Notes: generated from the letters alone by a model not told the origin. A DNA stretch of 64,000 nt from Chlorokybus atmophyticus (GCA_009103225.1 RHPI01001819.1:62001-126000); one strand, 5' to 3'. Positions 8,863 to 54,712 are shown, counted from the first letter of the stretch. Made by a program: numbers and translations.

Positions 8863-8968
8863 CACACGATTTTAACGTGCAAGAACCATGCATGGTCCTT
8901 CCACGGACCTCGCGGGCCAACCATGATCCGTCCTCCGCCGACCAGGCATTCGTGGTCCGCGGAGGACG
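8863..8968. mobile_element. Terminal relic of the CACAC-type transposon family, interrupted by pogo element 2
   Basis: CACACGATTTTAACGTGCAAGAACCATGCATGGTCCTTCCACGGACCTCGCGGGCC resembles the reverse complement of the 43726-43785 terminus. Confidence 0.7.
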
Positions 8969-22649: not shown

Positions 22650-25600
22650 CGGGGTTGTCGTCGAGCAAGATAGTCATGCACAACGTCTCAAGCATTATTA
22701 GCCAAGTGTGCCTCTGGCTCCCAGGATGCTTCATGCAATGGATAGCCCTTCCATTTCACTAAGAACTTGCGCACGCCATGCACAAACTTCTTACCAAGGA
22801 TGTCTTCTACCTCCCACTCTGGTTCACCATTCGTGCCAACTTCAGGGGGTGGCCTTTCCGGCGGTCGTCCTCGATATGCTTTTGGAAGGGAGACGTGAAA
22901 AAACGGGGAGGCACACGCATGGTGTTGGCTAGCTCCAGCTTGTACGCCACCTCCGATATAACCTTGTTGACCGTAAATGGTCCCAACCTGTGTTCATTCA
23001 GCTTGCGAACCCCCGTACGCACCTGTACATGCTTCGCGGCAAGTAACACAATGTCGCCTTCTTGAAAGGCGAGGTGTCGGCGATGCGTGTCCGCGTACTG
23101 CTTCTGCCTGTTTTGTGCCACCAATAGCGCCTCCCTAGCTGCCTTATTAATGTCCGCGCACTTTGTGAGGAAGTCATTAGCTGCCTCCACACGCACGTCA
23201 TGTCGTCGCGGTGTCCATGCCGTCAACGGTGTCAATGGATGTTGCCCGTAGTTCATAAGGAAGGGAGTGACACCTGTGCTTGCATTGTGCTGGTTGTTGA
23301 TCGCAAACTCCACCAACTCAAACAGCTCCGCCCAATTGTCTTGTTGCGCGTTAATGTAGCAACGTTGCATGTCCTCGATTGCACGGTGGGTCCGCTCTGT
23401 TTGCCCATCAGTTTGCGGGTGGAATGCCGTGCTAAACTTCAGTGTGGTACCCAGTGCACTATGCAGCGCCTCCCAAAACTTACTTGTAAAGCGCGGGTCG
23501 CGATCACCAACAATGCTTCGTGGTAATTCATAAGAACGAAACACATGCTTTACGAACAAGCGTGCTGCCTCCGGTGCCGTGCAAGACTCACCACACGGTG
23601 CCAAGCGTACCGTTTTGCTGGTTTTGTCGACAACACAAGTACAGCATCGTACCCTTCTTTTGTCTTTGGTAGCCCCGTGATAACGTCCATGGTAACTTGC
23701 TCCCACTTGGACAATGGCACAGGGAGAGGTTGCAGCAACTCACCTGGCTTTTGGTTGCTTGCCTTCACCCTTTGGCATGCGTCGCACAACGCCAGGTAGT
23801 CGCGCACCTCGCGATGCATCTCTCGCCAGTAAAAACGCTGCTTCAAGCTTGCCAAAGTCCTCTCCAACCCTTGGTGACCAGCAAAGGGCACATCATGAGC
23901 TTCCTTCAGCAACTTCACACGGATATGCGCAACGTTGGGGATGTACAAGCGCCCGTGGTGCCATAGCAGCCCGTCGTGCATTCACCAATGTCCACTTGTG
24001 TCCGTGGCTGCACTTTCCAGCTCTTGTAACACTTGCATACCCTCATTGTCTTTACAAAGCACTTGCCAAATCTGGTCGGTCCACTCGGGCTGCACTTGAG
24101 CGAGTGCCTCGATTGCATTTAGCCGGCTCAGCGCGTCAGCAACACCATTTGACGTACCGGGCTTACCGATATCGAAATCAAAAAGTTGAAAAAACTCCAG
24201 CCATCGTGCTTGTCTGCGACTTAGATGAGGTTGTGTTTTGTAAGTACCTCAGTGGAGAGTGATCCGTCAACTACGAACTTTTTGCCTTCCCAAAACAACG
24301 CCACTGTCGCAGCGCCATTACTTGCGCCAAAAGTTCCTTCTCGTGCACGGGGTGATTTAGCTCCGCACCACTCATCTTCTTGCTGAAGAATGCTACTGGT
24401 TGAAGGCCGTGGCCATGGTCTTGCTGTAAAACAGCTCTTACGGCTGTATTGGACGCGTCACAAGCCAAAATAAATGTCTTCTCCATGTCGGGGTGAGCCA
24501 GGACTGGTGCCTCCGTCAGCGCCTTCATCAACGCAGCAAATCCATGTTCCTTTGTTGCTGACCAGCTCCAGGGCTTGCCCTTTTTGAGTAGGGCAGTCAA
24601 GGGGAGCAGCTATGCACGAAAACCCCATGAAAAACTTGCGATAATACCCCGCAAGGCCTAAAAAGAACATCACCTCCGTTACGTTGGTCGGGGAAGCCCA
24701 CTCGCGCACCACCTGCACTTTGTTGGGGTCCGGCTTGATGCCTTCATGCGACATGATGTGGCCTAGGTACTCCACCTCTCGAAGCAAGAATTTGCACTTT
24801 TGTAGCTGGGCATACAACTTGTGTTCGCGCAAACACTGCAACACGCACCGTAGAAGTGCCACGTGCTCCTCCTTTGTCTTCGCGTACACCAAAATGTCGT
24901 CGAGGTACAGGAAGACTCCCTTACCAATCAAGTCAGCAAAAACGCTGTTCATTGGCGTTTAAAATGTTGCCGGCGTGTTCGTAAGTCCGAAAGACATAAC
25001 CAACCACTCGTAGTGCCCATAACGTGTGTTAAAAGCTGTTTTCTCCACATCCTCGGGCGCGATGCAGATTTGGTGATAACCTCCAGCAAGATCAAGTTGT
25101 GAAGTACTGCGCACCTTGCAATTGCTCCAGCAACTCGTCGATACGTGGGAGTTGAAAGTAATTCCTCTTTGTGATGTTGTTGAGAGCTCGATAGTCGACG
25201 CACATGCGCAAGCTCCCGTTCTTCTTTCGTTCAAACAAATAGGTCCACCATAAGGGGACTTACTAGGCCTGATGTAACCTCTTTTCAGCAAGTCCGCCAC
25301 CTGCCTCTCGGCATCTTCCAGTTTCAAAGGTGGTAACTTGTATACGGGTCGATACGGTGGCTTGTGCACGCCCTCAATCAGCTCCACACGGTCTATGCTC
25401 CGTGGAGGTGGTAAACCAGATGGAAGTCCGTCCACCATGATATCTTGGTATTTTTTAACAAGTTTACACACTTCGGGGTCCATCGTAGCCGTCGTAACAT
25501 CGTCACTCAGCACCGGTGCTGACTTTGCAGTATTTTCGTGCACCACGCACAACCATGCAGCCTTTGCCTTCCGTGGAGACAATAACTTCCTTAATTGCAC

Positions 25601-27210
25601 ATAAGAGATCAGATCAATTGTCGTACCACCTTGAATAGACTCTCCACCGTTTTGTTCGATGGTGAGCGCGCGCTTCCTCCAATTGGATGGATGAGTTATA
25701 TTGCTATAGCCACGGTAGTCCCAAATTCCGTCAAACCCGTTCCGTAGGGTGATGCAGCAAAATTGCATGTTCTCCTTCATCTTCCCAATGCGAACGCACA
25801 ACTCTTTGGTCATAAACGCAGCGCCATTACCTCCAGAGGGTGGCTCTCCATCAGCGAGCTTCACTTCACCTCCTCGTAATGACGAATTCTAACCGTAACG
25901 CCGCACAATATCGATACTCATAAAGTTGCTGTTGGCACCGCTATCAATCATGAGCTTACACTCTCTCCATCGTCCTTGGTCATCGCAAATGTGTGCTCGA
26001 AGCCCAAAGTACTTTGTTGTCTCCTCTTTGCATAACTCACCACCGTTGACGCATTCACAGCCATCTCCTCTGACTTCCTTGATGGAAATGTCACAGCATT
26101 CGTCCGTGCACGAGGCTCCTTCCTATCCCCAGCAGTAGCCTCCTCACCTACTTAGGGAAGTCGATTCTCTGCTCCACGCCATTTTGCTCCATGGTGTTGA
26201 CACGACGATCATGGCGAGGGTTGCCATACGGTGTTGGCCTTTGCATGCTTCGTTTGGGGCATTCATACGCCAAATGCTCAATCGACCCACAAGCATGACA
26301 CTTGCGCACCCCTTTACCTCTTTCACCACGTCCGCCGTGCCTCGCCTCGCTTTCATGCCTGTGTATGGCACCCACCTCCATTGGTGCAGGCCCAGAGTCA
26401 GCTCCACCTCCATTGGCAAGCGCTAAACTCGGTTCTCCTCGTCTCCATGCATGTTGAAGCCTCCCCGGGGTTGATCACCATGCCTTTGCCTCCAGTCAGT
26501 GTTTCTTGTGGTAAACTTGAAGTACAACGCGTCGAGACGCTCCGCGATGCGTATAGCCTCCGCGAGTGTCTTCGGGTCCCGTAGCTCCACTTCTTTACGC
26601 CTTAGAGGTTTTAAACCACGTGTATACCTGTCCAGCTGCTCCTCATCGGTCATATTGGGTATGGACATCACCGACCCCATTTGCACAAGGGCTGCAAGTT
26701 TGTCGCGTGCGGCCTTCACGCTCTCAACAGGAACAAATTGATATATACATATTGATTTATATATGTATATATATCAATATATACCTGACCTCCAGTGCCA
26801 ACTCTTCCATGGTGATCAATGGTAGCGCCAACCCACTTGCAACACGCGTACAACGTCTGTCTCCACCATACAAGTGCTGCACCTTCGCAGCAATGTCGCT
26901 GCAACCTCCGCGCGCAGATGCGTGGGCACCTCCGTGAGCTTCAACCAAGACGATACTTGGAAAATGCATTCATCTACTGCATCTCCATCACGTTGACCCT
27001 TGAATGGCTTGGGCTTTGGCACCTTCACATGCACGCGCGAGCTTGATGCCATGGGAACTTGCACACGCGCCATCGCATGCTCATACGCCTCGCGTTGTGC
27101 TTGTGCCGCCGCTTGAGTGTGATGAAGCTCTTCCCTTGATGCTAAGATGGCAGCTTGAAGCTCTTCCATGCGAGCATCCTCCATCTCCACTAACACATCA
27201 CACTCCATTT
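22650..27210 (-). pseudogene. Chromovirus gag-pol (gag, CCHC, PR, RT, RH, IN, chromodomain), many frameshifts
   Basis: KPKPFKGQRDGDAV, PMEVEL, CHACGSIEHLAYEC, LMIDSGANSNF, YLDDILVY, CDASNTAV, HDVPFAGH...CDAC, FHPQTDGQTER; chromodomain EVEDILGKKFVHGVRKFLVKWKGYPLHEASWEPEAHL near 22690-22815. Confidence 0.93.
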
Positions 27211-27946: not shown

Positions 27947-28339
27947 ATAAGGGTGTACACAACGGGATGGAGCAGGCTCAATTACAGAACAGCAACTTCG
28001 CACTGCCCTGTTGTGACAAGCAACCATGCTACATCGACAAGAAGGCATCGGCCTGAGACGGATGTTGGGGATGCAAGAAGGTGGCAATGCAGCTCGAGCA
28101 AGACTAGTGACTTGGCTAGTCACCAATCACCCTGCAGTGCCTCTGTTCGCATTCGGCACCAGATTGTTATGGTTGGACGCCTTCCTTCGCTCCCTACGGC
28201 AAGCCTACGACGAGGTTGCCTCGGCAGCCACTAACACCTTAAAGGAGCTCAAGAGGCCATACTAAGGTTGCCAAGGGTGGAAGCAGCGCAGCAACGCAGA
28301 TGCATCGCAGCTGCTTCTGAGCAGCATGTCAACAAACAA

Positions 28340-28930
28340 CACACGGATTGACGCTCAAGGACCATGAATGGTCCGTGACGCAGGACCGGGGTTTTCCCCT
28401 GCTAAGTGAAATTGACGGACCATGTATGGTCCGGCTTTCATGGACAGTCGGACCATGCATGGTCCGAATTTCACGTGAATGGTACCATTGTCCCTTGGGA
28501 CGCACCAGGCATGGTGGCCAGTATGCATGAGATTTATGGACCATGCATGGTGCGATGCCCCCTGGAACAGTGGACCATCCATGGTTTGTTGCTTGCTTCA
28601 TGTCCGGTGACTAACAGTCGCACCATACATGGTCCATGGATACGGACCGCAAGTCATGTTTGTTACTGAGATTGCCTGGACCAATCATGGTGCGCTGCCC
28701 TCCTTGCACAGTGGACCACATATGGTGCCAGTCTGGTCGACAGTCGCACCATGAATGGTCCATGGCTACCGACAAGGTGTTGCGCATACGTGGTCCACAA
28801 GCGGCACCACGTATGGTCCTGCCAGGCACCGCACCATACATGGTGCGGTCTACCTTGATTTGGTGCACCAATCATGGTCTGTCATGATGTCACATGCATG
28901 GAAGCCATGCATGGTGTGCGTGCTGTTTCA
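28340..28930. repeat. Left subterminal array of GGACCATG(C/T/A)ATGGTCC-like palindromes
   Basis: Roughly 15-20 degenerate copies with irregular spacing, e.g. 28359, 28417, 28450. Confidence 0.9.
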
Positions 28931-29049
28931 TGCACCATGCCTGGTGCATACAATCCGCCACGCATACAATTCACAAAAATGCTGGAATGGACTGTCAAAG
29001 GACAGTCTGATCATGATCATCAATATTAAGCTAGCGTCATGTACTATAC

Positions 29050-29956
29050 CTACAGTCTCCTACACTGCACGCTGCTGTTGACAGTCGCAGCTGACAACAG
29101 CTTTGTTGTGTTGCACCTTCGCCTGGGCAGCTGGACCCCATGTGAAGCCACTCCCATCTTTCCACATTGTGTGCTGACTCCCAGCCTCAGGAGCCAACGA
29201 CAGCCTCAGGAGCCAGGGACACCCTTGTTTGACAGCCTCTGTGGACAGCCCCTGCAGCAAACTCGTGCATCAAATGTCTGCAAAACAACTGTAAGTCTAC
29301 CTGTGCTTACACAAGACATACTGTGTTGACACACACATGCAACTGTAGCACAGTAAACCACCCTACTAGGATGACAAGGGCTGTCGCATCCACTGCTTCT
29401 TGGGTTGCCATGGCTTTTTCTTCCTTCCCTTGCTCAACAGCCCTGCAATGTGTAGTCGCCTCGACAACTACCCAAGGACTGTCAATGACTTGCAGTTCAA
29501 TATGCATACCTGGTAGTTTGCGAGATTCATATCGCCACTCGCACCCTCCTTCAACCTCATCGTTGGCCACCAACCACTTTTTCTTTGCTGCAAAGCTGAC
29601 AACTGCTCGCAAGATCCTCTCGTCTGGATAAGACTCCATTCGCTCACGATCCTTGAATGGCAGCTGGTGACGACTGGTGCATACCGCGTGCTCAATGTGC
29701 TGGTAGTACTCGTACACGTCCATCGCCTGCTCTCTAGTGGGGGCGTTTGGTTTGGTGTCGCAAACAATTGCAGCTGCAAAATCCAAGTCCATTGCAACTG
29801 TTTGATCTTCACAGTCGGAGATGGCTCCAGCAGCCTGCACATGTCATACATCCGTCAATAGAGTGCATTGGCGACTGTCCATATGGGACAGCCTGCGACT
29901 GTCAAGTGACTGTGAGGACCACGAGCGCGCGGCATAACGTAACGCCATACAAGCAT

Positions 29957-29994
<38 letters not shown>

Positions 29995-31680
29995 AGGCAG
30001 TGAGCAACAGATAGTTGGACACTGTGCGTGATGTTGCAAGAGATGGTATGTGTGCTACTGTGAGTGTGCGAGCAAACGCGTGCCAATGAGTCATGCCATG
30101 CGCTGACAACAGCCCTTACTGACCTCTGTGTCTGTGCTGTGCCGAGCTGCGGTCGTAGGCAGTATGTCCTTGATGCAACCCGGCACCACAATGCGATCGT
30201 CGTTGCCGCATGCCTCACATGGACAGATGCCTCCGCCGGCCAAGAACATCATGGGCCACTCCATCTCCCTGCCCTGCATGTTGTTTAACACAAAATGTTC
30301 TTGCACTCATGCACCATACAGTCACAGCAGGAGCATATCCACAGCAAGCAATGTACCTCCAGAGTACGCCCACCATGGCAGCTGCTTGCCAGCTGGCCAT
30401 AGAGAAAATGCCTCTCTTTCACAGGTAGGCGAATGCCAAGGTTGCCATCCTCGCTTCTCACTGGCATCCAGTGGGTAACACAGACACTGTACGTCCGCAT
30501 TGGTTGTTCTGGCTCGCATACGGACTTGATGGTGGCGACGCCAACAACTACTGCGTTGTTGGCAATGTCAAACACCTGATCTTCAGCGAACCCGTCCGCA
30601 CCCCTGTTAGGAAATTCTGAGTTAGCAGGCAGCATGTGTGAATCCAGTACGCAGCCATGGAGGCACAGCTAAGCAAACCAGTGAGGACTGTAGAACTTGA
30701 TCGACAGCCGACAGCACAATAGTTACCTCTCTTTCAGCCAAGTGGCCCGGTACTGAGCATCTGCTAGAGGCTCAGCAGTCAAAGGCGCAAGCATGACCAC
30801 CTGCTGGTTGGCCCTCGAGTCCCTGCCAATCGAAAAAGTCATGCCCCAGCCAGCAGCAGCTTCAGTAGCGCGGCTGCCTTGGGTAGCTTCCCTGTCGCTG
30901 GATCGCCTTTGCTTCTTGGTAGCATTGCGTTCTTCCATGCTTTGCCCGTAATCACTACCGCGCTTCGCGCCAACAGAGTACTGTAGCTGGAGAACATGAC
31001 TCTTGATTTGTGCTGCAGAAACACAAGCAGATGAGACATGGCAGCGACAGTCCTTTGGTAGCCATCAGCAAGGAGGTCACATCTTGGAACATAGCATAAC
31101 GCAACTGGTTACTGAGCAACCGACAACTGAAAGCATGAATGATATGCAGGGCAAGGACTGTCAATGGCAAGACAGAGAAGGAGACACAATAAAACCGAGG
31201 AGAAGGTGCCATGCTGCTTGGAAGGCTTGCTTCAATACAGCTCAACTCTACTAGCAGCTTGCCTTTGGTCCATTTCAGGGTGTGGTTTGTGTCAAAAACC
31301 AGTGGCTCTGACGCCTGCAATACAGTCTCGCAGACATCGTCCAGCTCCTGCCGGTGCTGGGCGTTCTGCTTGAAGTCTGTGCCTTTCATGCCTTGAGGTG
31401 GTGGCCACTTGCTCAGCATCTCTTTTTTCAGCTTCGCCAGGTTGTTGATATGCGTTGTGCGCATATGCTTGAACTCTGGTTTCATCAGGAACTGCGAGCC
31501 CGTCACTTGGCCCAGCAAGTGGTTCCCCTTTGCTCTGAAGCAATCAGCTGCAGCGGGCATTTGTCTTGCCTCCCCAGTGGTCATGGTGTCAGTTGGACTG
31601 CCTAAACAAACAACTGAACTTGGAGCAAACAGTTTAACTTCACACTTGGGGCAACCCAAGCTGTCGACTGTCAACAGAGA
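29050..31680 (-). CDS. Multi-exon hypothetical protein inside the CACAC element, possibly TnpA-like accessory protein
   Basis: Protein-like segments in ORFs 30955..31674, 30285..30635, 30091..30306, 29307..29840 and 29060..29260 separated by intron-like DNA; VVVGVATIKSVCEP...YSVCVTHW...RLP loosely recalls Tnp1/En/Spm accessory domains. Exon structure not verified. Confidence 0.5.
29958..29992. repeat. (GT)n microsatellite
   Basis: Direct observation. Confidence 0.95.
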
Positions 31681-31981
31681 CTGTCATGCAAGCAAGCAAG
31701 CTTCCAAGCTTGCAAGCAACCTGCTCACCTTTCAACAGCTAAAATCAACTGGCAAACAGCACAGAAGAAGTGCAAGTGTCCTGGCACCACAGCAAGTGAG
31801 CAACCCAAGCTGTCGACTGTAAACAGAGACTGTCATGCAAGCAAGCAAGCATTCAAGCTTGCAAGCAACCTGCTCACCTTTCAACAGCTGAAATCAACTG
31901 GCAAACAGCACAGCAGAAGTGCAAGTGTCCTGGCACCACAGCAAGTGAGCAACCCAAGCTCGACTGTCAACAGGGACTGTC
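31651..31981. repeat. 149-bp tandem repeat, ~2.2 copies
   Basis: GCAACCCAAGCT... starts at 31651, 31800 and 31949. Confidence 0.95.
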
Positions 31982-32301
31982 GGACCAGTGCCTCACATAA
32001 ACAACCGCACAAGCCGCACAAGCGTTGTGAGTTCGCACAAGCCACACAAGCCGCACAAGTAGCGCAACAATGCAACTCGCCAAGAGAGCGACGCGGCTGT
32101 CGGTAAATTAGGGTTGAACTCGCCTAGGAATTGACGGCTGTCTGTGGGTTAGGGTTGGCGGCGTACACAAGCGTCGCAAGACCTTTGGCATGGTTGTTGT
32201 TGTTGTTGAGCAAAGATTGGGGGTGAAGGGTTTGGTTCAGGGTGCTGTTGGGTAGGCGTCGACAGTCTCTTGGCACAGTGGACAGTCCAAGGCAGTACAC
32301 C

Positions 32302-35300
32302 ATGGCTCGAAGGAGGTCGTCCACAGCGCCGCAGTTTATATGGGGCTGCCTTTACTGTATGAACAGCGTGCACGCTGGTCACCGTAATGCAGACGGCCAA
32401 CCTGGCATGGGAGAGACCAAGCCCACGAAAATTGCACAGCACTGGAACGGTGCTCTGTGCCGAATGATGCGCGTGCTCAGCAATAAGGGAGGGAGGAAGG
32501 ACAAGGCTACACTCGAAAAGTTGGCAGAGAAAATCCAGCAATCCATCAGGGTACGAACCCTCAGGCATTCTTGATCCAAGTTCTTGCAACATCCTGCCTG
32601 GACTGTCAATGATGTGCCTTGCGCGTGCGTACAGCGCATTGGCTCATGGTGCAGATACTTGACAGCCGTTGCTTGAATCCTGCGCATATCGGTTGTACTT
32701 GACAGCCGTTGCTTGAATCCTGCGCATATCGGTTGTAATATGAGTGCAACCGTCGTGTTCTTGGACTACGTGAAGTTTCGTGACATTTTTGAACGCACAA
32801 TGCAACTCACCAGCAGCGGCGTGCTGCAGGATGAGCAACTGCCCCCTTACCCCAATCCCGCAGTCTCAAACTTGAAGCACTGCAAGATGGCAGACATCAA
32901 GGCTATTCCAGGATATGTGAGTTGCTGAATTCGCACAGCAGCAATGAAACCATACTGCAACATGCGTACTAACCCTGCCATGTTTCAGACCAACGAACTG
33001 TACGAAGAGATGCAACAGCTGGCGGCTATGCATACCTGGACACGCAGAGCAACACGATCTCGAGGAGCAGGAAGATCAAGAGGAGCAGGAGTAGCAGGAG
33101 AACCACAGGATGAGGACGAGGACGAGGATGAGGACGAGGAGGGTGCGACACCCAGTCCACCGAAGCGAAAACCCTCAAGGCGTCGCCAAGCCGCAGCAGT
33201 GGATTATGCAGCGGAATTCGCCAGTGCTCTTGAAGAGATGAACAAATTCCAGGTGAAACGCTACCCCTCAACAGGTTCCAAAGCGCCACCCAAACTTTCT
33301 GCTGACTACTTGAGGGTGAGAACATATCATGACAGCCTATGCCAATGTAATGGTCTGTGTTTATCTTTGCGCTAGAGTCTGATGGTTACTTATCACTGCA
33401 TTAAACAGACTGACCGGGAGATACCAAACCTCAAGCTCATCCATCGTAGCGCTGGAGACAAGCACCAGCTGTGGAGACTGGATAATGTGGAGGATGCAAG
33501 AGCATCCACACGCATCCCAGTCAACGAGCAGTTCAAGTATCTTACGCACAACTGGTTGATCAAGGACTCAACCATCACTGGTGCTGGACTGGGACTGTTT
33601 GCCTGCGAAGACATTCCAAACGGTACGTGCACGTGTGTGCGTGTGTATCTTTGTGTGCATGTCTCTCTGTGTACTCGCGGATCACTCATGACTTGTGCGC
33701 ATCTGTGCAGAGGCTTACCTGTTGCCATATGACGGCAAATGGTTCAAGCAACAGGAGATGGAGGAGGTCTTGCATCGTTACCAGCAAATCCGCGAAATCC
33801 GACACCACCGGCGATATCATGTCAACCTGTTTCCACCAGATACACCAAGCCATTATCAGGTTGTCATCGACGGGCACCCCCGCACTGGCTGTGTAGCGGC
33901 TTACATCAATTCCGCACATGGGCACACTCAGCCCAACGTCATGTTCTACTCGGACTTCGATGACGTCGGCCACCCAGCTGTCACTGTGTATGCAACTAGG
34001 GACATCAAGGCAAGGGAGGAGCTACTCTTAGACTACACCCCTTTCCCTGCGCCACCAGACGGGCAGACATACCAAGTAAGTGTGATTGCATTGCTGCATG
34101 CCCAGTTTGCATGCCTTGTTGGTGCGACTGTCAATGCGAGACTGTCAATGACTCCACAACTGTGACACTGGAAGCTAACTTGCCTTCTTTGCTGGCAGAC
34201 CCAACTGTGGCAAACGGAGGATGCGGCGCAGAGGCTTGCGAGAAGTTGGAAGTTGACCACGGAGGACGCTATGTGGTTGCTTACCAGCAAGCCACCAAGG
34301 CAGCTGGGCGAGAGTGACTTCGCATATTCCATGCGTTTGGTCCAGCGTGTCTTCAGCATGCCCAATGCGGACGCAAAGACAAGAATGGTGAGTTGTACTG
34401 ACAGTCTTCCAACAATGACAGTCTCTTCGACAGTCTTATCGACAGTCTGTTGTTTTGCATTCCTGTCGCAGTGCACTTGCATGCACTGTGACATGTATGC
34501 TAACAACCAAGATCACGTGCATGTGTCAACAGATAGATTCTGAAGCCCATATTCAGCGTCAAATATCTGTTCATTTCTGTAAAGCGGTTTATGATGCTGC
34601 CTACGAAATGAAAGAGGCTGCAAACAGACAAGTCGACGCCCTAAAACAAGTCATTAGGGAGTTAGACCTACGGATAGAACAAGAGAACGTGATCAGGGTA
34701 CGTCAGCATGTGGTGCACCTTTCACTTCACACATTTGCTTAAACTGTTACCTGTTTTTGCAGGAAAAGGTCGCTGGTATCCAGAGAAAGACTGCCGAGAT
34801 GCACAGAACTCAGACAGCAGCTATTACTACCAGAGAGGGGGCTCTCACCAGGCAGGCGACAGCATTGGCACTGAATGGAGAGGACTGGGAAAAGGATTGG
34901 GAGAGAAAGATCCGGGGTATGCTGCAGAAGGGCTTCAAGGAGTCCAGAAAGGAATGGCTTGACGAACTCAAGCGGGACATTGTGCGTACACTTGTAAAAG
35001 AGCAGAGCGAAGCTGACACACGGGCGGAGGCACAAGCTGCAGCATCTTTATTGGTGGCGATCAACAACCCTGATACTCCCCATTCACACGACGATCATCT
35101 CCATCAGTTGAGAGTGCCCTTGCACCCCGCACCTCCACCACTGAAGACCTGGCTGGAGAGACAAGCTGAGCGTGAAAATCCTCCACCTGACACTCCACCT
35201 CCCCACAGTCCCAAGGACAGTTCACCTTATGACAGTCGCGCGGACAGTCCACCAGCCGACAGTCCACCTCACCACAGTCCACCTCACGACAGTTTCCATG

Positions 35301-37483
35301 ACAGTCCCCGTCCATCTGCCAAGAGAAAGAGAGAGAGAACAAGTGCCCCCATGTCTACACCCCCAGCTGAGAAGAAACGTCCCCTTCAGCCAGACACTCC
35401 TGCACGGCCAACTCTACCAGCTGTGCGGCCACAAGCTGGAGAGGAGGCTCTAGCAGCAGCGCGTGATACAATTGAAGGTTTCAAGAAGGCCCACGAGGAG
35501 CACCGCAAGGCCGTCAATGACGCATCGAAATTGAGCGAGGAAGTGGCAAACGCTGTGGAGATTTCTGCAGAACAGCTGTCATTCGCCCTCGGGCTTACAA
35601 GACAAGCATTGGTGAGAATAATTGCATCGCGTACAGTCTTTGTGGAAGAAGGGGGGGGGGGGCTTTGATAATCTGTTGTGGCCTCTGTACTTGATGTCTA
35701 TGTGCGACAGCAAGGACAAGAGCGCGTTCTTGCAACTCGTGACAACCTGCAGACCAGCCTAGTCAGTGTGAACGAGGCGCGCAAGCAGTATTACCAGCGT
35801 ACTCTTGACCTTGAAGTAGCGGAGTCGCAGCAACAGGTTGCAATCCTTCGCAAGGAGTTACAGGAGACGCAACAGAGGGCTGCAGATGCCAACGCTGAGG
35901 TCGCCCGGGTGCGCAAGGAGTTGGAGGAGACGATAAAGACAGCATCAAGAACAAATGATGAGTTCAACCTACTCTTAGCCGAGCTGCGCAAGAGGTTCCA
36001 GGTGTCGGAGCAGAGGGCTGGGGCATCAGATGCTGTTATTGCCAAGCTGCGCAATGATTTGGAGGAGACGGAGCAGAGGGCTGCATTAACCGATGCTGAG
36101 GTCAACAATGTGCGCAAGGATTTGGAGCATGCGGAGCAGAGGGCTGCAGCTTCCAACTCTGAGGTCGCCAAGCTACAAAAGGAATTGGCGGAGTTGCAGC
36201 AGAGGGCTGCCGCTTCCAACTCTCAGGTGGACAACCTGCGCAAGGAGAGGGAGGAGTTGCAGCAGAGGGCTGCAACCACCGATGCTGAGGTCGCCAAACT
36301 GCAAGAGGAGTTGGCTACAGCACTCGAAGCCGCCAAGGAGCGTGCGGCATCAATTGACGCCCAGATTCGCGGCCTCGAATTGCGAAACTTTGATTTGCAA
36401 TCGCGCATGCTGGCAATGGCCTCCAGCTCCTCTGCGGGCGCCAAGATTGGGGAAAAGATGGAGAGTTCTCGGCAGCGCATTCGCCAGCAGGAGCAGGAGG
36501 TAGCACAGCAAGCGGCGAGGCAGTCAGCATCAGAGGCCGTTGGAGGGGCTGTCGATGCAGCGGCTGTCGATGCCGCGACAAGAAGAGCCAATGAAGCAGA
36601 GCGGCAGCTGGCAGAGGCGCAAACCCGCTATCAAGAGTTGGAGCAGAGGCTGGCTGCAGTGCCTTCAACATCAGAGGCTGTCGGAGGGGCTGTCGACCCA
36701 TGCGTTGACGAAAAGCTGAATGAAGCGCTAGCAGGTGCAGAAGCTTTAGACAAGCAGGTGAGAGACCTCAAAGAACAGCTGGACAAGCAGGTGGCAGATC
36801 ACAGAGCACACCTCCAGCAGGTAGCACAGAATCGTGTGCAGTACCTCATCGGCAGAATCAGGGAGTGGGCGCGTGAGGTCTCCAACCAATTTTTTGCACT
36901 GCGAAACTACGAACGTACAATAGTGTTGGGCCGTTTGCCAAACACTCAGCTCTTTAACGATTGGCCACAAAGATTTCGGGAGGACCCAGTCGAATGGCCG
37001 GGTATCTTCATACGGCGTGCAGCTCAAATCAGGCAGGCGTGGCAGCAATCACAACGGAGTGCCATTCCATTCACTGGCTTTCAACAAGGTGCCAGTGGGT
37101 TCTGGGACTTCTACAGGAACGCCGAGTCGCACTACACTGGCATCTTGCAGGAACCCGAAATCACAAGGCGCGCTACCCTAATTTCCATGTTTGACGTAAT
37201 GGTTGTCATGCTATCAACGTCTGTGCACCACCTCCGTGACCTTGACGAAGGGATGGCTTCACTTCGAGGACCAGCGGCAGCGCCATTGTATCAGCTACAG
37301 CGTCCAATGGACTATGCCGCTGCATGGGCGTGGTTGCAAACCCCCGCAGGTGTATCAGCCCTCAGCAGCTACCGCGCTCAGTGCTCCATACCAAGACCTC
37401 CTCGTCCTCCTCCTCCTCCTCCTGCTGCTGGTGCTGCTGCTGGTCCTCCTCGTCCTCCACCTCCTCCTCCTGATGCTGGTTGA
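32302..37483 (+). CDS. Spliced SET-domain protein (putative lysine methyltransferase) with Cys/His-rich N-terminus, long coiled coil and Pro-rich C-terminus; probably frameshifted in exon 2 in this copy
   Basis: SET motifs IKDSTITGAGLGLFACEDIPNG (~33555-33622), AAYINSAHGHTQPNV and VYATRDIKAREELLLDY (~33895-34040); GT-AG introns join ORFs 32242.., 32713.., 32944.., 33382.., 33695.., 34253.., 34757.. and 35678.. (e.g. intron ~35612-35710 gives in-frame LTRQAL|QGQERV); 40-bp duplication at 32656-32735. Confidence 0.82.
35870..36320 (+). repeat. 63-bp (21-aa, three-heptad) repeats in the coiled coil
   Basis: EQRAAASNSEVAKLQKELAEL / QQRAAASNSQVDNLRKEREEL / QQRAATTDAEVAKLQEELATA and at least three further degenerate units. 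Confidence 0.9.
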
Positions 37484-37739
37484 TGTTTCCCTGGTTTATA
37501 GCTTTAGTGTAAGTTGCCTAGCAGTTGGCCTTTGCGCGCTGCAAGTAGATCTGCTGGTACGCTTGACCCTTCCTTGTGTACATAATCTGTGAAATGTACA
37601 AGTGTGTTACTCACAGTAACCAATGCGTGCTTAGTAATGCCTTGTGTAATGCCTTGTGCCAAAAACACACACTGATAGTGTTGTTACCCGACAGTCCTAG
37701 GGACAGCCGACTGTCCATGGGACTGTCAAGGAACAACAC

Positions 37740-40700
37740 TGATGAGACAAGTGATGCGTACCTGCCTCAGCCTCGCCTGCTTTGTAGTACATGATGTGCC
37801 TGTCGTAAAACATACGCGCAACCTCAGTTGTCGGCTGCTCTTGCCATCTGCCTTGATCAACTTGCTGCCAGTTGAGCTTCCTCTTGACCGCAATAGGTGA
37901 CACCTGTTGGTTGCGACAGTCCTTATTGACCACCCACCGTGGTAGGCCTTGGCGAGCACTCGCTGATCTAGGAGCAGGCTTCAGGTAGTCAACCAACATG
38001 TTGCCTTCATCGTCAACTTGAGGCTGTCGAACAATAACAATCCATAGCGGTGGATCATCAGATACAGGTGCTGGTGGGTCAGTTGGCACGCGAAAGTCAA
38101 AGACCGACTTCTTCTCATCCTCATGTCTCACAAGCAGCACATCCCCGGTTTCAGGCCATACTGGCAGAGGTATATCAGCTGCTCGCAATCGCAGCTCTGG
38201 GTTGCTGAAATCGTAAGCCAGCATGTAGGGGAGCAGCCTTGGTCTCTCCGTCAGCATCCACACTTTGCGCAGCAGCTGGTGGCCTCGGACAAGAATGTTG
38301 GTGTTTTCCAAACGCCCCACATGCAAGGCACCGGAGTCTGCGTCCATGCATTGATTTCCAACAGCATCTTTTTGCAGACTGTAACGGTTGACAGCAATGT
38401 ACACATGGCACTCGGTGTGAAAGAACATGAAGATTTTGTTGACGATGGCTGGCCTGTTTCCATCCAGCATCACAGCATCCTTGCAGTCGCGCCTGTGTGT
38501 GTGAGAGAGAGAGAATATTGGTCAGTCGTTGTTTGACAGTCTCAGCATTGACAGTCTGCGCGGCTGTCAATGCTGGGACTGTAGATATCAGAGATAGAGA
38601 CCCTATAACGGACAGTCGCACCAATGACAGTCGTTTGTGTGACAGTCGTTGGTGGGACTGTCGATGACAACTGTGCTGCATTCATAATCAAGATATAAAG
38701 CACACCTGTATACCAGGCCGTCCCTCATATAGGCTTTGTAGTCGCGCACTGTCCGTCGTGTCGGGGTGCCAATGGCAATGTTCTCTTGTGCACAGATGCT
38801 CTCGAACAAGATGTCGCTCGCGACATAATGAGTGTTGCCTCGCCCAATCACTATGCCTTGTGATTTGATGCGCCTGGAGTGTGCCAGGGTGGGGTATGCT
38901 TCCACAAGCGCCCAAATATCCTCTGCGTGCTTGATTGTGGCGACCTCATACCAGGTGGACCCGTTGAATTCTGTTTTGCAGATTGTAGACAGTATGTTGC
39001 CAACTCTATGGCAGAGCAGCAGGCCTGAACGCTGATCGTCACGCATGACGCCAAATAGTCGCACAAACCATCTCCTGACAGAACGTTTCATAAAGCTGAT
39101 CTCGTAATCCTTGCAGTTGGACGGGGTGTTGACATACAGCTTCACAGCGCTCAGCGGCGTAGCACCAGAACACGTCATGGCTGCCGTGTCTACGGATGTT
39201 GTCAAGCAGGTGGCAAGTTCCCGCAATGTGCTCCAAAATCTTTTTATTGGTGCCAAAGCAGATCTCGCTGTTGACCTTCCAGTACGTGAGCAATGCATCC
39301 GCGAGCTCCAGGCGGTCTGAGTCCCAACCAAAGCGCCGTGAGATGTCAATGAATAAGCGGAAGATCATGTGGAGACACATGACGAGATCTCTCCTTTCTT
39401 CGCTGAGCAGCTTGTGAAAAACATAGGGCACACCAAATTGCACGAAGAACTGGTGCTCCTGCGCCTTCCACCATCCAAGGCGACTGCTGAGGCCGTGTGG
39501 CCAGCGATTACCATTCTTCACCTCTCTTGGTCTTGCATTCCTCATCACGGACAGCCGACTGTCGATGTCAGCCTTGCTGACCTGCTCGTCCCCACCATCC
39601 ATCAGAGTGCAGGCTGTCAAGCTCTTGGCCAGTCCTTCGGCTAGCGTGTGCATGGTATCAAAGACCATGTCCTGACATGGGTCAAACTTGTACATCCGCC
39701 AAAGCCTCCACAAAGGCGACAGCCCGTTGACGCCATACTTCTTGGCCTTTTCTTTCTTGCGATTGGGATCTTCAGTGCTTTCAACTTCATCGGCCAGCTG
39801 GTATGTGGCCTCTGCAGTTCTTTTAGCAAATGGATGGCGACTGTGGTAGCGGCTGCTAGCATAGTGGAAGTCGGTCCTGTTGCTCCGAGTTTCTTCAACA
39901 ACATTGTTGCCAGTGCTGGGATCTTGAGTGACTTTTTTGGTGACAGTAGAGTGCTGGATATGAGTTGCCAGCAGGCAACAAGCCCTGCAACCGCATAAGC
40001 CGCCATTCTTGAATTGCCCCATCTCGCTTTGGGCTGGATTGTCACCGGCAATGTTCATGACCATGGCTCTCAGGAAAATCTTATCACCTGCAAACCATTG
40101 GAGGCATCAGGACTCATTGCTTCGTGCGCAGCAGCGCGCGTACGCGACTATGCACGGGACACAGCCGCGACTGTCGATTTGGACTGTCGGACATGGGACC
40201 TGGAATGGACAGTCGCATGGACAGCCTTGCTCAAGCGAACTCATACAAGCATGGCAGTGGAGTGCATAAGATTGACAGTCGCCGTTGACAGCGCAAAGAC
40301 AGTCCTGAGCTTAAACAAGCATAGCAATGCATTCCATACATATGACAGTCGCAAGAACAGCTGCGTGCGCGTGGCACTGCTAAACAGATGCATGCGAGCG
40401 TACCAGCCAATCGATGAGGGAGCTTGATGTCCACCTGGCTGGAGTCCAAACCGTAGTGCGTGGGGAAGCCCATGGCGTACAAATCCTCCAACTCATCCAC
40501 CATGGGCTTCATGAACGGGTTCAGACAGTCCTTGTCCGCGTCGAGTAGCTCGTCAACTGGGACAAATACTACTGGCATGATGGAAGACGCCTGTGAGCTG
40601 ACGCGCTTGCCTCCATTGAGCACAACGACGTTGATGACAAGGGTGCTCCGCTTTGTAGTGGATGCGCAGCTGAAACCATCACTGTGCAGCATGAGCCCAA

Positions 40701-42634
40701 TGTTGCGTGGGTCTCCAGTACACTGCTGCGCAGCCTCTTCATTCTCATAGGACTCGCAATGCCATTTCTGATAACCATCCCTGTGCTGCGACATGTCAAT
40801 GTCATAATTGTAGCGTCCACAGTCGCATTTGTTTGGCAGAGGGATGGTCTTCGTGCAGTCCCAAAAAGCAGTCAGTTCTCTCCATTTGCTGCCATGCCAA
40901 GCTTCCCATTGAGGAGCTGGGGGATGGTTTGCTGGCACGTTGAACCAGGTGTCTTTGTCTCGCCAAGCAGCAAGGTTGTCATATGCGATCGAAGGAACTT
41001 GCAGCCACGGACCGAGTCTTGGACCAATGGGCGTGTACAGAAAATCTATACACTCCTTGCGCGTGCGCCCGCATTCGCCTCCGCACGGCTGTTCCCACAA
41101 GCGTTTCAGAATCTTGTGGCGACTGTCGTCTTGGCAGCTGTCCTCGCAGTCACCGTAGCCTGATGGATAGGCATCTGGAAAGAGATAATTGCATCGTGTG
41201 CATGCTGTATATCTCTGTGACTCTGGCATTCCGATGGAAGTCAGCAATGCATCGACGGCCGTGATGTCAGCCGGCTCGGAGGGGTTGCGCTGGCCGAGCA
41301 AGGCATGGAGATCGTTACGGAGCTGACTGTGGTTGTAGGCGGGATCCTTGGCCAGCTGTACAATGGAGTCTTCGGCACCAAAAACAGTCTTCAGCACGTT
41401 GTTGATCAGTGATTGCTGTGCATGAGAGTCCTCCAAGTCTGTCAGCAACGACATGAACTTGTCCAGCATTTTTTGCGTGGGTGTTTCCGAGGACTGTTGT
41501 TGACGAGAAATGCCGGGTTGAGGTGCATCACATTGCGCTGAAGGCATTGGCGGTGGGTGCATACTTTCTTGCGCTGCCTCGTCCAGTCGCATGTGAGCCA
41601 ATGAAGTCTCCAACTCAACCCACTGCCCAATCGCAACATACGACTGTCAATGTAGGTAGCATGGATGGCAATGCTGAAAGTGCGCGCATGGTGGGCTACG
41701 GACGCGCATGGTGGCGCTACGGACAGTCGCAGGCATGCAGCATTCCCAGACATGGGCAGCTACAGTACGACAACTATGCGCGCAACAAGTTGATTGCTCA
41801 CCTTGCCAAGGCACCTTGGGCAAGAGCAAATTGTGTAGGACACTTCTTGCTGTTCTGGATCATCATCATCGCTACCAAGAGGCTCAAACATGTCTTCAAT
41901 TGGCATGTCAACAGTCGGCTGTCGATCCGACTGATGCTGAAGTGGAGCAGTTGCGGCGCTGCTGGAGCTGGGCATGTTGACAGTCGGCTGTGGATCAGCC
42001 TGATGTTGAAGTGGAGCTGTCGCGGCACTGCTGGTGCTGGCAACATCGAAAGTCGGCTGTCCACCTGACTGTTCCCTTTCGTGAAGTGTAGCTGCCGCTT
42101 CATTGCTGGTGCCGGCCAAATTAACAGTCGGCTGTCCAAGCACGGGATGCCTGAAGCAATCTTGCAGTCAGTGACACACCACATGCAATGGCACCATCGG
42201 CTGACAGTGGAGATCACAGCAAGGCAGCAAGTGCACTAAGTTGATCGACAGTCTCTTAGCATGGTGAAGGCTGTTTATGTACAGCATTCCTATTGTTAGT
42301 GGCATGCATACTGTCATGTATACTCAATGAAGAGCAGTACGCCAGGTACAACAGCGTGGTCAACTTACTGCTCATGCTGCTGGCTGATGTCGCTATGCTG
42401 CCCGAGCATGGCCGGATCTTCATGGGCGGGCTGAGGGTTGACAGCCTCAATGGGCTGGTCATCAACCACATGGTGCTGGACGACATCAGCCTGCTCCGGT
42501 AAGGGTAGGGAACTCTGTTGGCTGCGAAGGCGGTTGTTCCTACGAAAGGTGTTCCTCTTACTGGCTGGTTGCAAGTTGATTCCCAGCTTAGTACTAATGT
42601 CCTTGGCGAAGCGGACAGCCTTTTTACTGGCCAT
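37740..42634 (-). pseudogene. CACTA Tnp2/TnpD-like DDE transposase, spliced, one frameshift
   Basis: Start MASKKAVRF (42634); CSCPRC; DPRNIGLMLHSDGF; LNPFMKPMVDELEDL; IAGDNPAQ...CGCRAC; DMVFDTMHTLAEG; HLLDNIRRHGSHDVFWCYAAER; an apparent 2-bp deletion near 39145 switches frame (ER-AVKLYV). Confidence 0.88.
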
Positions 42635-42749
42635 TGGTACAGCTAGATTCTGCCAGCAAAGACACCGCCAACGAGGCCGCCGCCACCAACCAGAGCGCCG
42701 CCGCTCCCTCTCTGAGCGCAACCCTATTACGCAGACCATGTAGGTAGGA

Positions 42750-43785
42750 ACCCTATTGTTGGCCCATGCACGTGACTCGACAGTCGCACCATGCACGGTG
42801 CGACTGTCAAGTCTTCACTCCATGTAATTTGAAGATGCCGACCGTTCGATACGCTTGAATCGACGGTCAGATGAGGCTGGGCTGCGTTGTATCCCAGCGT
42901 CCGTGCAATCTCAGCTATGACGTGTATCATATACGAGAACATACCCGGTAAGCTATCTTATGGCAATGGGAGGGATGTGCTGGTTGGCCCTGTCAATGCA
43001 TTCACTTGTCCGAATGAATGCACTAACGGGGTCAATGAGCACATCCTCCGCTGCCATAATTTGCAGATCATTCTTTTTTCATCCGTCGCGCCGGTAGTGG
43101 CCAGTAGTGGCCCATGCATGGTGCGACTGCCCAGTCTTCACTCCATGTAATTACATAATATGCCGAACCGGAATCATTTACGTGAGGACCAACCTCGAAC
43201 CATGCATGGTTCAGCAACCATGGGGTACCGACCATGCATGGTCCCTACCCGCGGATAATCGGATTAGGAAGAGCCTGGTTGGGTTAAAGACCATGAATGG
43301 TCCGCAATCTTACGAAAATGTGGACCTGTATGAGCTTTCATGAGCCGCAGACCATGCACGGTGTGTGCTGCTTGTCAAAAGTGACCGATAAGCTCAGCGT
43401 GCACCAGCAATGGTCCGCCCAATGATTCCGGTTCGGACCAGCCACTTTGATGTTATCTACCGGAACATATATGGTCAAGCATTGATGTAGTCCGGACCAT
43501 GCATGGTCCGTAGACCCATTGACAGTCGGACCGGGAAAATGCCTGGTCCGGCTGCGAACCATTCATGGTCCGGACTTTCACGGCATATCGGACCGGTATA
43601 TCACCTGGTCCGGCCGCGGACCATGTATGGTGCGCGACTGCGCGCCAGGTATCGGGGCCCCGAAAGGACCATGGACGGTCCGTCCCCTGGGGACCAGGCA
43701 CTCGTGGTCCTCGGGGCACGGACCATGTATGGCCCGCGGGGTCCGTGGAAGGACCATACATGGTCCCCGAACGTCAATCCGTGTG
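42750..43785. repeat. Right subterminal array of the same palindrome
   Basis: Copies near 43110, 43200, 43230, 43290, 43495, 43620, 43720, 43750. Confidence 0.9.
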
Positions 43786-44402
43786 CAACCAGAGATTTAC
43801 CTCACTGTGCGGGCACGAGCAACAACGATGCTAGAACTGGGGGTGGTCAATGGCAGATGGGATGCCTACATGGCAGGGATCCTAGGGGTTCCCACCATTA
43901 CCCACGACATAAGAGCGCGGCTCCTGCGCGCAGTGTATTTCCAGCCCATGCTTCAGAATCACCGCTGGTGTGACGTGGTCAATAATCCAACACATGGGAA
44001 GGTACATTGCTTAGGGAGGCAGCTCATGCTGTACGCTGGACTTATGTGGAAGAACATGCTGCACGGGAGGCGGGCCCACAAACACCCGCTCCTCGGGGTT
44101 TCCCCAACAGCCACTGGCTACGCCGCCAGGTATGACCCCGGCCACACAGAGGCGCAATCTCCTGCGCCACAACCAGGGCAACCACAGGCAGCACCGCCAG
44201 CACCCAGGCCACAGCGTGTATACCAACAGCCAAGACAAGGACGGTTTGGGCCAGGCTGCGGTCAAGGAGGTTCTCAAGACCCAGTTGGTCTAGGGGCGCT
44301 TGCCGCACTGCACTCGACACCACCGGAGGAGACTGCAGCAGCAATCACTCCACGCACACGCTACCGACGATTCAAGCGGCTGCGCATGACGCCAATGCAG
44401 CC

Positions 44403-44760
44403 ATGATCGCCAAGAAAAGCAAGCATATTATTATTAATAAACGAGCACCCAAGCGCGTGATGCTAGACTCTGGAGCCAAGCGTGTCATCATCGGACGTTA
44501 CCTCGCACGCTACCTTGGAATCACCAGCGCTCAGCTGATGTTTTGCCCATACGTGCTCGACACAGCAACCGGCAACCGTGACAAGGTGATTGGCATTACC
44601 AACAAGGCCCTCTGCATTCGCTTGACAGGGGTGGACCCTTCCCACAGCATCGAGGTCAAACAGAAGTGTGTGGTCACCGACGCAGGATCCTTCGACCTGT
44701 TGCTGGGACAGGACTTCAACGCCCCTGTTGGCATGGGGCTGGACTCTGGACAGAGAAGGC
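44403..44760 (+). pseudogene. Aspartic protease domain of the DNMT-Gypsy
   Basis: RVMLDSGAKRVIIG and FDLLLGQDF. Confidence 0.85.
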
Positions 44761-45159
44761 ATGGTTTCGTTCCCATTGAGATGAGGAGGATGGAGAGGTT
44801 CAAGGATATTTTTGCCTCTCGAGCTGGTGGCTCGCACTCGCTCTCACCAAAGGTCAGCTGCAACAGCCACCTACAGGTCGATTTTGACAACCGCTGACAG
44901 ATCAACTGCGGTGGTCACCCACAACCCTAACCAAGACTCTCATATCCCATATGACGAGTCTCAGGAAGATGCCACTGAAAAAATGGCCCACCAGAAACCA
45001 GCGGAACGCCGCTGGCGCACACAGGAGGTCGCACATCTACTACTGACCAGACCACGGCTCACTTCACGGTTCCCTCTCTACAAGGACCAAGCCGCAGTCC
45101 AGGAGCAACACCAGGTGGGCACTTCAGTAGTGGAGTTTCACGTATTCCGTCAACAACAA

Positions 45160-46140
45160 GGCATCACTATGTTGGAACTATTTGAAGGTATAGGTAGTGG
45201 CGTCGCCGCTGTCCTCAACATCGGCGCAACGGTCACCAAGTACTTCTACTGTGACCTTGATCCACACGCACGAATTGCCCTGAGCCATCACCTGCGCCAC
45301 CTACACAAATGCTACCCGTAGCGGCTGCCTTGTAGTGCGCTATCGGCACTACAAGGCAGTTTGAAGGCAGGCGGCTGCCACAGGACGTTTGTTAAATCAC
45401 TGCGGATCACCTCCTGTCCGGCGGGCAACATCGAGCTGCTGATAGCAGGATAAGAGTGTCAAGGACACTCCAGAGCAGGCAGAGGCCAAGGACTCGCTTA
45501 TCCTTGCTCGCGATTGTTTTGGGAACTGATGCGTGTCATCAAAATCCTGCAGAGCAACCAGCTATCTTAGCCTCCGGGATACATCATCAAAAATGTGCAC
45601 TTCAATAGGATAATGAGCGCAATTACATGGCCAACAGCTTTCGACAGGTGTGTTCTTTACTAGGACATTCTCTCAAAATCAATGCAGCGCGTCATGGCTC
45701 CCGTGCTCATTGCATCCACGCCAGATGGACCGCCTCTGGCTACAGTCGAGGATCTCTTTGCTGCTGAATATCTGCACAGCAGTTGTCCACGTGATCTCAC
45801 TGTTGACGCTATCCTGAACTCTGAGCGCATAGCACAACCGGTCACGCAACACGATCACCAGCACTTCTGACCATGCAACCAGCCTAGTCAAGCACGTCGT
45901 GCGCTCCCCACCCTGGTGTCTTACCCAGGATCATGTGCCTTCCGCATTCAAGGCGAAGGCATGGTGTTGGATTCTAAAACTGGGCGACTGGAGGAACCCA
46001 ACGCACATGAGCGCGAACGCGCCATGGGATTCTTTCCAGGAAGTACCGCAGGTTCCACGCTGACCGACAGTCAGCAATGTCAGGGGATGGGACGCGCAGT
46101 AGACCAGAGCTGCATGGTGTGGTTATTAGAGATATGCTTA
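45160..46140 (+). pseudogene. C5 DNA cytosine methyltransferase domain within retrotransposon pol
   Basis: Motif I LELFEGIG; motif IV IELLIAG*ECQGHSRAGRGQG...SRLFWELMRV; motif VI YIIKNV (ENV-like); motif VIII-like AARHGSRAHCIHARWT; IX/X-like EPNAHERERAMGFFPGST...MGRAVD. Several stops and frameshifts. Confidence 0.88.
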
Positions 46141-46433
46141 GCTCTCCACGACTGCCATGTGTCCTTCCGGGTGCTCGAACACCTGGCGGGGGGGTGGGCC
46201 GATCGCGTGCGAGAGACCAAAGCGGCACACATCGCCCTCGAAATCAGCCATATAAAGGAGCAGGCAGCAGTCACTGTGGAGCACATTTTAGTGGTTGCCA
46301 ATGCTACCTCTTGGTCCCATGCCATTAGACCACTGGCTACACGCCAAACGCGAGAACAACTCGAGACTCTCCTTAACAAGTGGAGGAGTCAGATCAGCTT
46401 CAGCATGAAGAAATTGGGCGTCTGCTCAGTTTA

Positions 46434-54400: not shown

Positions 54401-54712
54401 ACAGACCTGTACAGAGCAGCAAAGTCACTGGTCCGTGCCGCACCAGATGTGGTACCGAACGGACCGAGTACGGTGCGCGACAGGAGGACCGCAAGGCCGC
54501 GGGACCTTACCTTGTTTAGATCCAAACCAGCGAGGCATGAATGGTGCGGCACGGCCCATTTCTGGTACGCGCCAGGCATTGGGGTCCTGAACGGACCAGA
54601 AACGGTCCATCCCCCGCGGACCACGCAGTCCTGGCTCGCGAGGGCCGGACCATGCGTGGTCCGCGGGGTCCGTGAAAGAACCATACCTGGTCCCGGAACA
54701 TCAAGCCGTGTG
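51420..54712. mobile_element. Non-autonomous or composite derivative of the CACAC element
   Basis: Left end CACACTGCTTGACGTCAAAGTACCAAGAATGGTCC resembles 28340; right end GAACCATACCTGGTCCCGGAACATCAAGCCGTGTG resembles 43750-43785; flanks TAC and TTG do not form a TSD. Confidence 0.65.
52050..53745 (-). mobile_element. L1-like LINE 3' fragment with internal deletion
   Basis: RT remnant PLALFLFVLAVEPL (~53700-53745), post-RT EVLRQPWCFNP...DLW, and zf-RVT-like MWKSLHTLPV...LLTGDRL...HLFISCNFALAIW (52429..52809). Confidence 0.8.

Follow-up and report, generated by a model that had tools for sequence, protein, structure and literature searches.

Whether a DNA transposon may carry a SET-domain protein of its own, and what such a protein would do for the element, is the question raised by a gene of Chlorokybus atmophyticus that occupies positions 32302-37483 (plus strand) of a 64,000-nucleotide stretch of DNA (GCA_009103225.1 RHPI01001819.1:62001-126000), here called the window. 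A preliminary description of this DNA proposed that the gene belongs to an autonomous DNA transposon and provides it with its own histone or protein methyltransferase, in which a SET domain is fused to a Cys/His N-terminus and to a long coiled coil. The gene does lie within a complete, autonomous-looking element of the CACTA type, and its SET domain is, by its sequence, a genuine one, highly divergent and devoid of pre- and post-SET modules. The reading that is preferred here, with a probability of about 0.6, is that of an accessory gene of a CACTA/EnSpm element, whose product would be a nuclear, oligomeric protein responsible for lysine methylation of chromatin at copies of the element.

The element and its SET gene

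The element, a complete CACTA-type DNA transposon, is delimited at 28340-43785 (15,446 bp) by its inverted ends, by the CAA triplets flanking them and by its enrichment in the heptamer GACWGTC. Its terminal inverted repeats (TIRs), at 28340-28374 (plus strand, beginning CACACGGATTGACG) and 43751-43785 (minus strand), form a pair (I1) of 35 nucleotides with 89% complementarity, which is the longest inverted repeat that an inverted-repeat search detected in the region; both ends begin with CACACGG, deviating from the classical CACTA at bases 4 and 5. The triplet CAA at 28337-28339 recurs at 43786-43788, in each case abutting the end of the element, and constitutes a 3-bp target site duplication (TSD), the length expected for CACTA/EnSpm. 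Palindromes resembling GGACCATGCATGGTCC are numerous up to about 600 bp from each end (pairs I5-I7, I9, I10, I13, I16, I17, I22 and I23) and make up subterminal repeat arrays.

The transposase gene (37697-42814, minus strand) and the SET gene lie tail to tail; the former consists of six long open segments that can be joined in frame via GT-AG introns into a chain of about 1,500 codons. One of these segments, of 460 codons, gives a weak, sub-threshold match to Transposase_21 (Tnp2; PF02992) at about 40423-40731 (E 6.8e-5, 22.6 bits vs a cut-off of 28.6), and a word-based protein search with the same open reading frame (ORF) retrieved zero homologues. The 5' part of the gene contains a 69-nt tandem repeat in 2.3 copies (41902-42061). 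With its TIRs, 3-bp TSD, subterminal repeats and uninterrupted multi-exon transposase, the element looks structurally complete and autonomous.

Within it, the SET gene appears, on the sequence-built model, to be an intact-looking and real accessory gene of nine exons and about 1,400 codons, with a reading frame of about 4.3 kb that is unbroken over all nine exons and with eight good splice-site pairs. The seven introns downstream of exon 2 are 60-145 nt long, start with GTGAG, GTACG or GTAAG and end with AG, and several of them have a CTAAC-type branch site just 5' of the acceptor. In exons 1, 2, 4, 5, 6 and 9 the GC content at third codon positions (GC3) is 0.57-0.70, vs 0.36-0.49 at second positions (GC2), while intron GC is 0.42-0.52. 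Exon 3 (32989-33315) encodes basic, acidic and again basic patches, which places here the charged patches noticed in the preliminary description, together with PPKRKPSRRR, a motif resembling a nuclear localization signal (NLS). Exons 4 (33376-33622) and 5 (33711-34075) carry the SET domain, and are followed by exon 6 (34199-34387), by exon 7 (34533-34697), in which the helical region begins, and by exon 8 (34763-35611), with helical segments, a Pro/Ser-rich DSPP repeat and the NLS-like motif KRKRER, in this order. The stop-free terminal exon of 601 amino acids described earlier is indeed present as an ORF of 601 codons at 35678-37483, of which exon 9 probably takes the part from 35711 (35711-37483), encoding long helices, 63-nt tandem repeats, a helical C-terminal region and a Pro-rich tail. 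With the patches of its N-terminal part and the two NLS-like motifs, the predicted protein is nuclear-looking.

At its 5' end the gene is less regular. Exon 1 (32302-32550) is open for 83 codons from its ATG, encodes the pattern C-x2-C-x4-H-x2-H and, further on, H-x4-C, and ends at the phase-0 donor AGG/GTACGA. From this donor (32551) the frame can continue into exon 3 (acceptor 32988) or, via a weak acceptor, at 32776. The zinc-binding N-terminus of the preliminary description finds no support: no zinc-finger model recognizes exon 1, neither a Pfam family nor a cluster of the Atlas (recognition 1483, below the mark of 2300). The second candidate zinc ligand of that description, CLNPAHIGC, is probably wrong: its codons are part of a tandem duplication of 40 bp (32656-32737, 2.0 copies, 100% identical) outside canonical in-frame splicing, since the exon-1 donor is out of phase with both acceptors that would add it, as found by splice enumeration, and it would become coding only via a weak GTTGGC donor at 32520. 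The duplication is probably intron or leader. Exon 2, (32740)-32916, has its own in-frame ATG at 32740, a phase-0 donor GTGAGT and a GC3 of 0.64, like the other exons; it might be used as an alternative first exon or else as a cassette.

The third gene of the element (29307-31674, minus strand), divergent from the SET gene, comprises ORFs of 177 and 239 codons and has no Pfam match. Between the two genes lies a 149-bp tandem repeat (31651-31981; 2.2 copies, 95% identical) that is rich in GACTGTC and is possibly a promoter or regulatory region shared by both.

The SET domain and the helical region

The SET motifs quoted in the preliminary description, GAGLGLFA, YINSAH...PNV and one further, are present in the two exons named above. 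Exon 4 provides the N-terminal flank and motif I (TGAGLGLFA), the domain starting at about 33553; exon 5 provides motif II (PYDG), motif III (YINSAHGHTQPNV) and motif IV (EELLLDY), the domain ending at about 34036. The exon 4/5 junction (N/E) places TGAGLGLFA about 20 residues ahead of PYDG, which is the usual spacing of motifs I and II. Exon 5 alone matches the Pfam SET family (PF00856) with E 1.7e-7 and 32.0 bits, above the gathering score of 22.4, and among the 100 ESM-Atlas clusters nearest to it, 89 represent SET families (the SET clusters of the Atlas score 0.96). Motifs I (GxG), II (YxG) and IV (ELxxDY) are canonical; a metagenomic protein with a strong SET match of its own (P0003) can be aligned with motif I and, through EEILIDY, with motif IV, and EELLLDY aligns with EELTFDY of SUV39H2 and EELTYDY of SET1 (HMMER). 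In motif III the Asn and the PN are kept, Y-I-N-S is aligned by HMMER to F-V-N-H of SUV39H2, three residues are inserted before QPN, and other His residues stand 2 and 4 positions past the place of the canonical one. A likeness of this motif to the PR/SET domains of PRDM proteins is not claimed, as no PRDM chain is found among the 26 best PDB matches. The SET region of 204 residues contains only three scattered Cys, hence no pre- or post-SET Cys clusters, as the preliminary description had stated.

The best PDB matches are spread over SUV39H2, SET1 and KMT5A with E values of 0.35-1, each of them non-significant, and Pfam detects in the exons of the gene no chromo, PHD or Tudor reader domain. 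The orphan character of the domain (see below), the lack of a signature of any histone lysine methyltransferase subfamily and the lack of these readers by Pfam are consistent with a protein whose methylation target is not a histone but, for instance, the transposase or a silencing factor of the host; the NLS-like motifs, like the precedents in the literature, would point instead to chromatin, and little weight is given to a non-histone substrate. Nor does any exon match the N6-adenine methylase family PF01555 or any other methylase in Pfam at E <= 1.

Downstream of the SET domain follow about 900 mostly helical residues. Modelled by AlphaFold2 from its single sequence, exon 9 forms two long helices, at residues 2-101 and 107-237 (about 100 and 130 residues, pLDDT 70-83), and further helices extend up to about residue 400 with no confident globular domain. 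About six tandem units of 63 nt (21 residues; 74-75% identity) lie in the helical region at 36006-36302 and, taken together with the 69-nt repeat of the transposase gene, suggest that the coding regions of the element grow by internal duplication. The last 170 or so structured residues (about 36833-37330) are modelled as helical with low confidence; Pfam has no family that recognizes them, the nearest Atlas clusters (recognition 1476) are helical and dynein-tail-like and too weak to be used, and a proline-rich tail closes the protein. The Pfam matches of exons 8 and 9 all remain sub-threshold and belong mostly to coiled-coil-type families. The long coiled coil proposed earlier is thus retained as long helices with a 21-residue repeat, the matches to coiled-coil families being below threshold; the model points to a coiled-coil-like stretch, enlarged by these repeats, through which the protein might oligomerize.

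The same features can be read in another way. A second protein, which binds DNA, is a classical requirement of CACTA elements, and the SET domain might be catalytically dead, the protein being a structural factor like TnpA of En/Spm that dimerizes, binds the repeats of the element and either pairs its ends or regulates transcription. The change of the NH-motif His to Ser, the 3-residue insertion and the missing post-SET module would agree with a dead enzyme, and exon 9, about 590 of the roughly 1,400 residues and modelled almost wholly as helix, the sub-threshold coiled-coil-type matches of exons 8-9 and a heptamer that fills the element and, being palindromic, resembles a dimer binding site would agree with a structural factor. 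However, motifs I, II and IV are intact, including both conserved Tyr positions, no DNA-binding domain is recognized in the SET protein, and the third gene is an equally good candidate for the DNA-binding partner. A purely structural role is therefore considered unlikely, and the protein is still read preferably as a methyltransferase.

The heptamer, the copies and the origin of the gene

The window contains 58 copies of GACWGTC vs 8.8 expected, no shuffle having reached 58, and 54 of the 58 copies fall within the element, leaving 4 in the 48.5 kb of window DNA outside it. In the SET gene, whose introns were seen to carry the motif in the preliminary description, there are seven copies in the 841 bp of introns vs four in the 4,341 bp of exons. 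The four exonic copies, all GACAGTC, fall within the stretch of exon 8 that encodes the DSPP repeat (35231-35306) and are translated as Asp-Ser; here, at 35189-35307, a 15/27-nt tandem repeat makes the DNA motif coincide with a low-complexity D-S-P-P segment of the protein. Several of the arrays are local tandem repeats with a period of 12-15 nt. That the introns share the signature of the element fits a long residence of the gene in it, without being proof, because locally tandem arrays can expand quickly; the earlier view of a gene that is integral to the element and co-evolved with it, rather than recently captured, thus finds support in the shared motif and in the failure to find a near-identical host gene, whereas "co-evolved" is carried by the motif distribution alone.

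With phmmer, the SET exon gave three weak matches among 1.84 billion representative proteins, from which the source proteome is apparently absent; the best (E 8.5e-6) is a repeat protein with no SET match, the similarity being limited to one short stretch. A metagenome scan with the same exon confirmed zero loci, and word-based searches with exon 9, whole and as residues 375-560, found zero, the whole-exon query being swamped by coiled-coil words. The exact look-up of two ORFs of the window in the assembly collection returned no record, one query being GTG-initiated, so that its first residue may mismatch the called protein. No parental SET gene of host, bacterial or viral origin was found in the libraries searched, in which the host proteome is apparently missing. 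On this evidence the SET lineage appears to be an orphan, with no detectable relatives in these libraries.

A single public run (X1) contains the locus, with 72% of the sampled words. Its contigs are colinear with the window through the introns, with zero joints, so that it behaves as a DNA run and is uninformative on splicing. The copy that it holds is about 99% identical to the window (divergence about 0.7%). Of 54 differences, the 40 that were classed comprise 7 synonymous and 25 non-synonymous changes, as well as 8 changes within 1,260 bases of non-coding DNA. The indels are confined to non-coding DNA, except in one minor contig (depth 3.3 of 14.9), where a single base of the SET exon is deleted (33745), which suggests that the X1 sample includes a member of the family that is frameshifted and decaying. 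Contigs at 90-95% identity indicate that more diverged copies are present as well. The family is young, apparently autonomous and multi-copy.

These comparisons bear on the possibility that the element has recently captured a SET gene of its host, in the manner of Pack-type elements, and that this gene is of no use to it and in neutral decay. A ratio of non-synonymous to synonymous differences of about 1 against the X1 copy, the deletion at 33745 and the irregular 5' end, with its 40-bp duplication and doubtful junction of exons 1 and 2, are what such a capture would leave. Against it, the frame of about 4.3 kb is intact over nine exons joined at eight good splice-site pairs, making the gene complete and not a fragment; none of the 1.84 billion representatives is similar, although the host proteome may be missing there, and no near-identical parent gene turned up; and the introns contain the element motif at about 100 times its background density. 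A recent capture is regarded as very improbable.

The surroundings of the element are other transposons. A non-autonomous CACTA relative of 3.3 kb (51420-54712) has a left end (CACACTGCTTGACG...) 69% and a right end 80% identical to those of the large element and contains no long genes; its flanking triplets, TAC and TTG, mismatch, so that it is probably older. It has one copy of GACWGTC, from which the heptamer would probably be dispensable in cis for transposition. An isolated fragment at 8872-8968 (minus strand) shares 77% identity with the large element at its right terminus (43681-43777). To the left of the element are a Gypsy-type pol (5-4179, plus strand), in which aspartyl protease, reverse transcriptase, RNase H and the zinc-binding and core domains of integrase are encoded by consecutive ORFs, a DDE_1 (pogo/Tc1-like) transposase ORF (13882-14553, minus strand; E 7e-11) and a second retroelement fragment (22807-25864, minus strand) with an integrase core, a Tf2-type SH3 domain and reverse transcriptase. 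Directly to the right lies an ORF for a retroviral-type aspartyl protease (44403-44897, plus strand), followed by ORFs at 44812-47291 that have no Pfam match; a cytosine methyltransferase is not seen among the four ORFs scanned here, which cover parts of the stretch.

The proposed role and its parallels

The most likely role of the protein is that of a nuclear, oligomeric lysine methyltransferase acting on the chromatin of the element. Within the nucleus it would work in dimeric or oligomeric form, held together by the coiled coil; its SET domain would methylate a lysine on a protein of the chromatin, at copies of the element or close to them; and this methylation could in turn influence the epigenetic state of the element itself or its transposition. 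Such a role would match what has been suggested for the SET genes that HarbingerS, oomycete MuDR and red-algal Plavaka elements carry.

Several observations weigh against this proposal. With N-S in the place of N-H and a 3-residue insertion, motif III makes catalytic competence uncertain. The AlphaFold2 model of exon 5 alone, a partial domain folded with no alignment, reaches a pLDDT of only 36.9. No DNA-binding or zinc-finger domain is recognized, by Pfam in the exons or by the Atlas in exon 1. The exon model is predicted from the sequence, the sole run with the locus behaving as DNA, and the 5' exon structure is ambiguous around the junction of exons 1 and 2. Finally, the proportions of differing sites between window and X1 are 0.0070 for synonymous (pS), 0.0075 for non-synonymous (pN) and 0.0063 for non-coding positions, and pN/pS is about 1.06 over 40 differences. 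The preliminary description had looked to such a ratio across copies as a check; obtained from one copy of about 99% identity it is neutral and uninformative, since selection acts only on the transposing lineage and a neutral pattern is expected between young copies or alleles, speaking neither for nor against function.

A more specific version of the proposal adds an address. Either by itself or together with the third gene's product, the SET/coiled-coil protein might recognize the GACWGTC arrays in the introns and intergenic DNA of the element and write a lysine-methyl mark on the nucleosomes of the element. As a whole this chain is rather improbable. If true, it would make the protein a self-addressed chromatin writer, by which an autonomous element sets its own epigenetic state, and the non-autonomous relative, with its one copy of the motif, would not be so marked.

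Among known systems, the maize En/Spm element, with TnpA and TnpD, has TIRs beginning with CAC, a 3-bp TSD, subterminal repeats, a Tnp2-type transposase and at least one further protein. All of these have a counterpart in the Chlorokybus element, the transposase by a weak, sub-threshold match. The Chlorokybus element differs in that its genes are separate and do not form one alternatively spliced unit, its second protein has a SET domain, and no plant TnpA-type family is matched.

SET genes have been reported in HarbingerS elements and in MuDR families of Phytophthora (Kojima and Jurka, 2014, Repbase Reports, cited in PMC12730594), and their capture by Helitrons is cited in a preprint on Bostrychia (bioRxiv 10.1101/2025.02.11.637652). 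The HarbingerS and Phytophthora elements are, like the present one, cut-and-paste DNA transposons with a SET gene as a regular accessory gene; they belong to the PIF/Harbinger and Mutator superfamilies, and the passages drawn on here make no mention of a fusion to a coiled coil. A close parallel is Plavaka of red algae, a member of the EnSpm/CACTA superfamily whose accessory gene PAG2 combines an N6-adenine methylase (PF01555) with a SET domain (bioRxiv 10.1101/2025.02.11.637652). According to the sections of that preprint drawn on here, both are giant CACTA-superfamily elements, of 17-19 kb there vs 15.4 kb here, with three extra genes there vs two here beside the transposase, one in each case with a Pfam SET domain, and with internal repeat arrays suspected to be binding sites of a protein encoded by the element. 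By contrast, PAG2 has a DNA methylase, whereas the gene described here has no Pfam DNA methylase and continues from SET into a long coiled coil; the element here has CACAC termini and a 3-bp TSD, and the hosts differ. As no library protein is detectably similar, the SET domain was likely acquired independently of Plavaka. A functional analogy only is offered by VANC of the Arabidopsis VANDAL (MuDR) elements, an anti-silencing protein to which both PMC12730594 and the Bostrychia preprint refer: in these accounts, it is an accessory protein thought to act on the epigenetic state of its own element via scattered short motifs. As there described, VANC lacks a SET domain and induces loss of DNA methylation, and motif binding or anti-silencing by the present protein would be hypothetical.

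SET genes as transposon cargo are thus already known, and the picture of what transposons can carry is unchanged. What appears to be new, going by the sequence, is the combination of SET with a long coiled coil and no DNA methylase, the orphan SET lineage and the element-wide heptamer. Other chromatin enzymes encoded by transposons have been published, among them DNA methyltransferases in retrotransposons and TET/JBP proteins in fungal elements. Such enzymes illustrate ways in which silencing by the host may be manipulated by mobile DNA, and, if the organism can be cultured, the element of Chlorokybus would offer a tractable system for asking whether a transposon-borne SET protein acts on its own chromatin.

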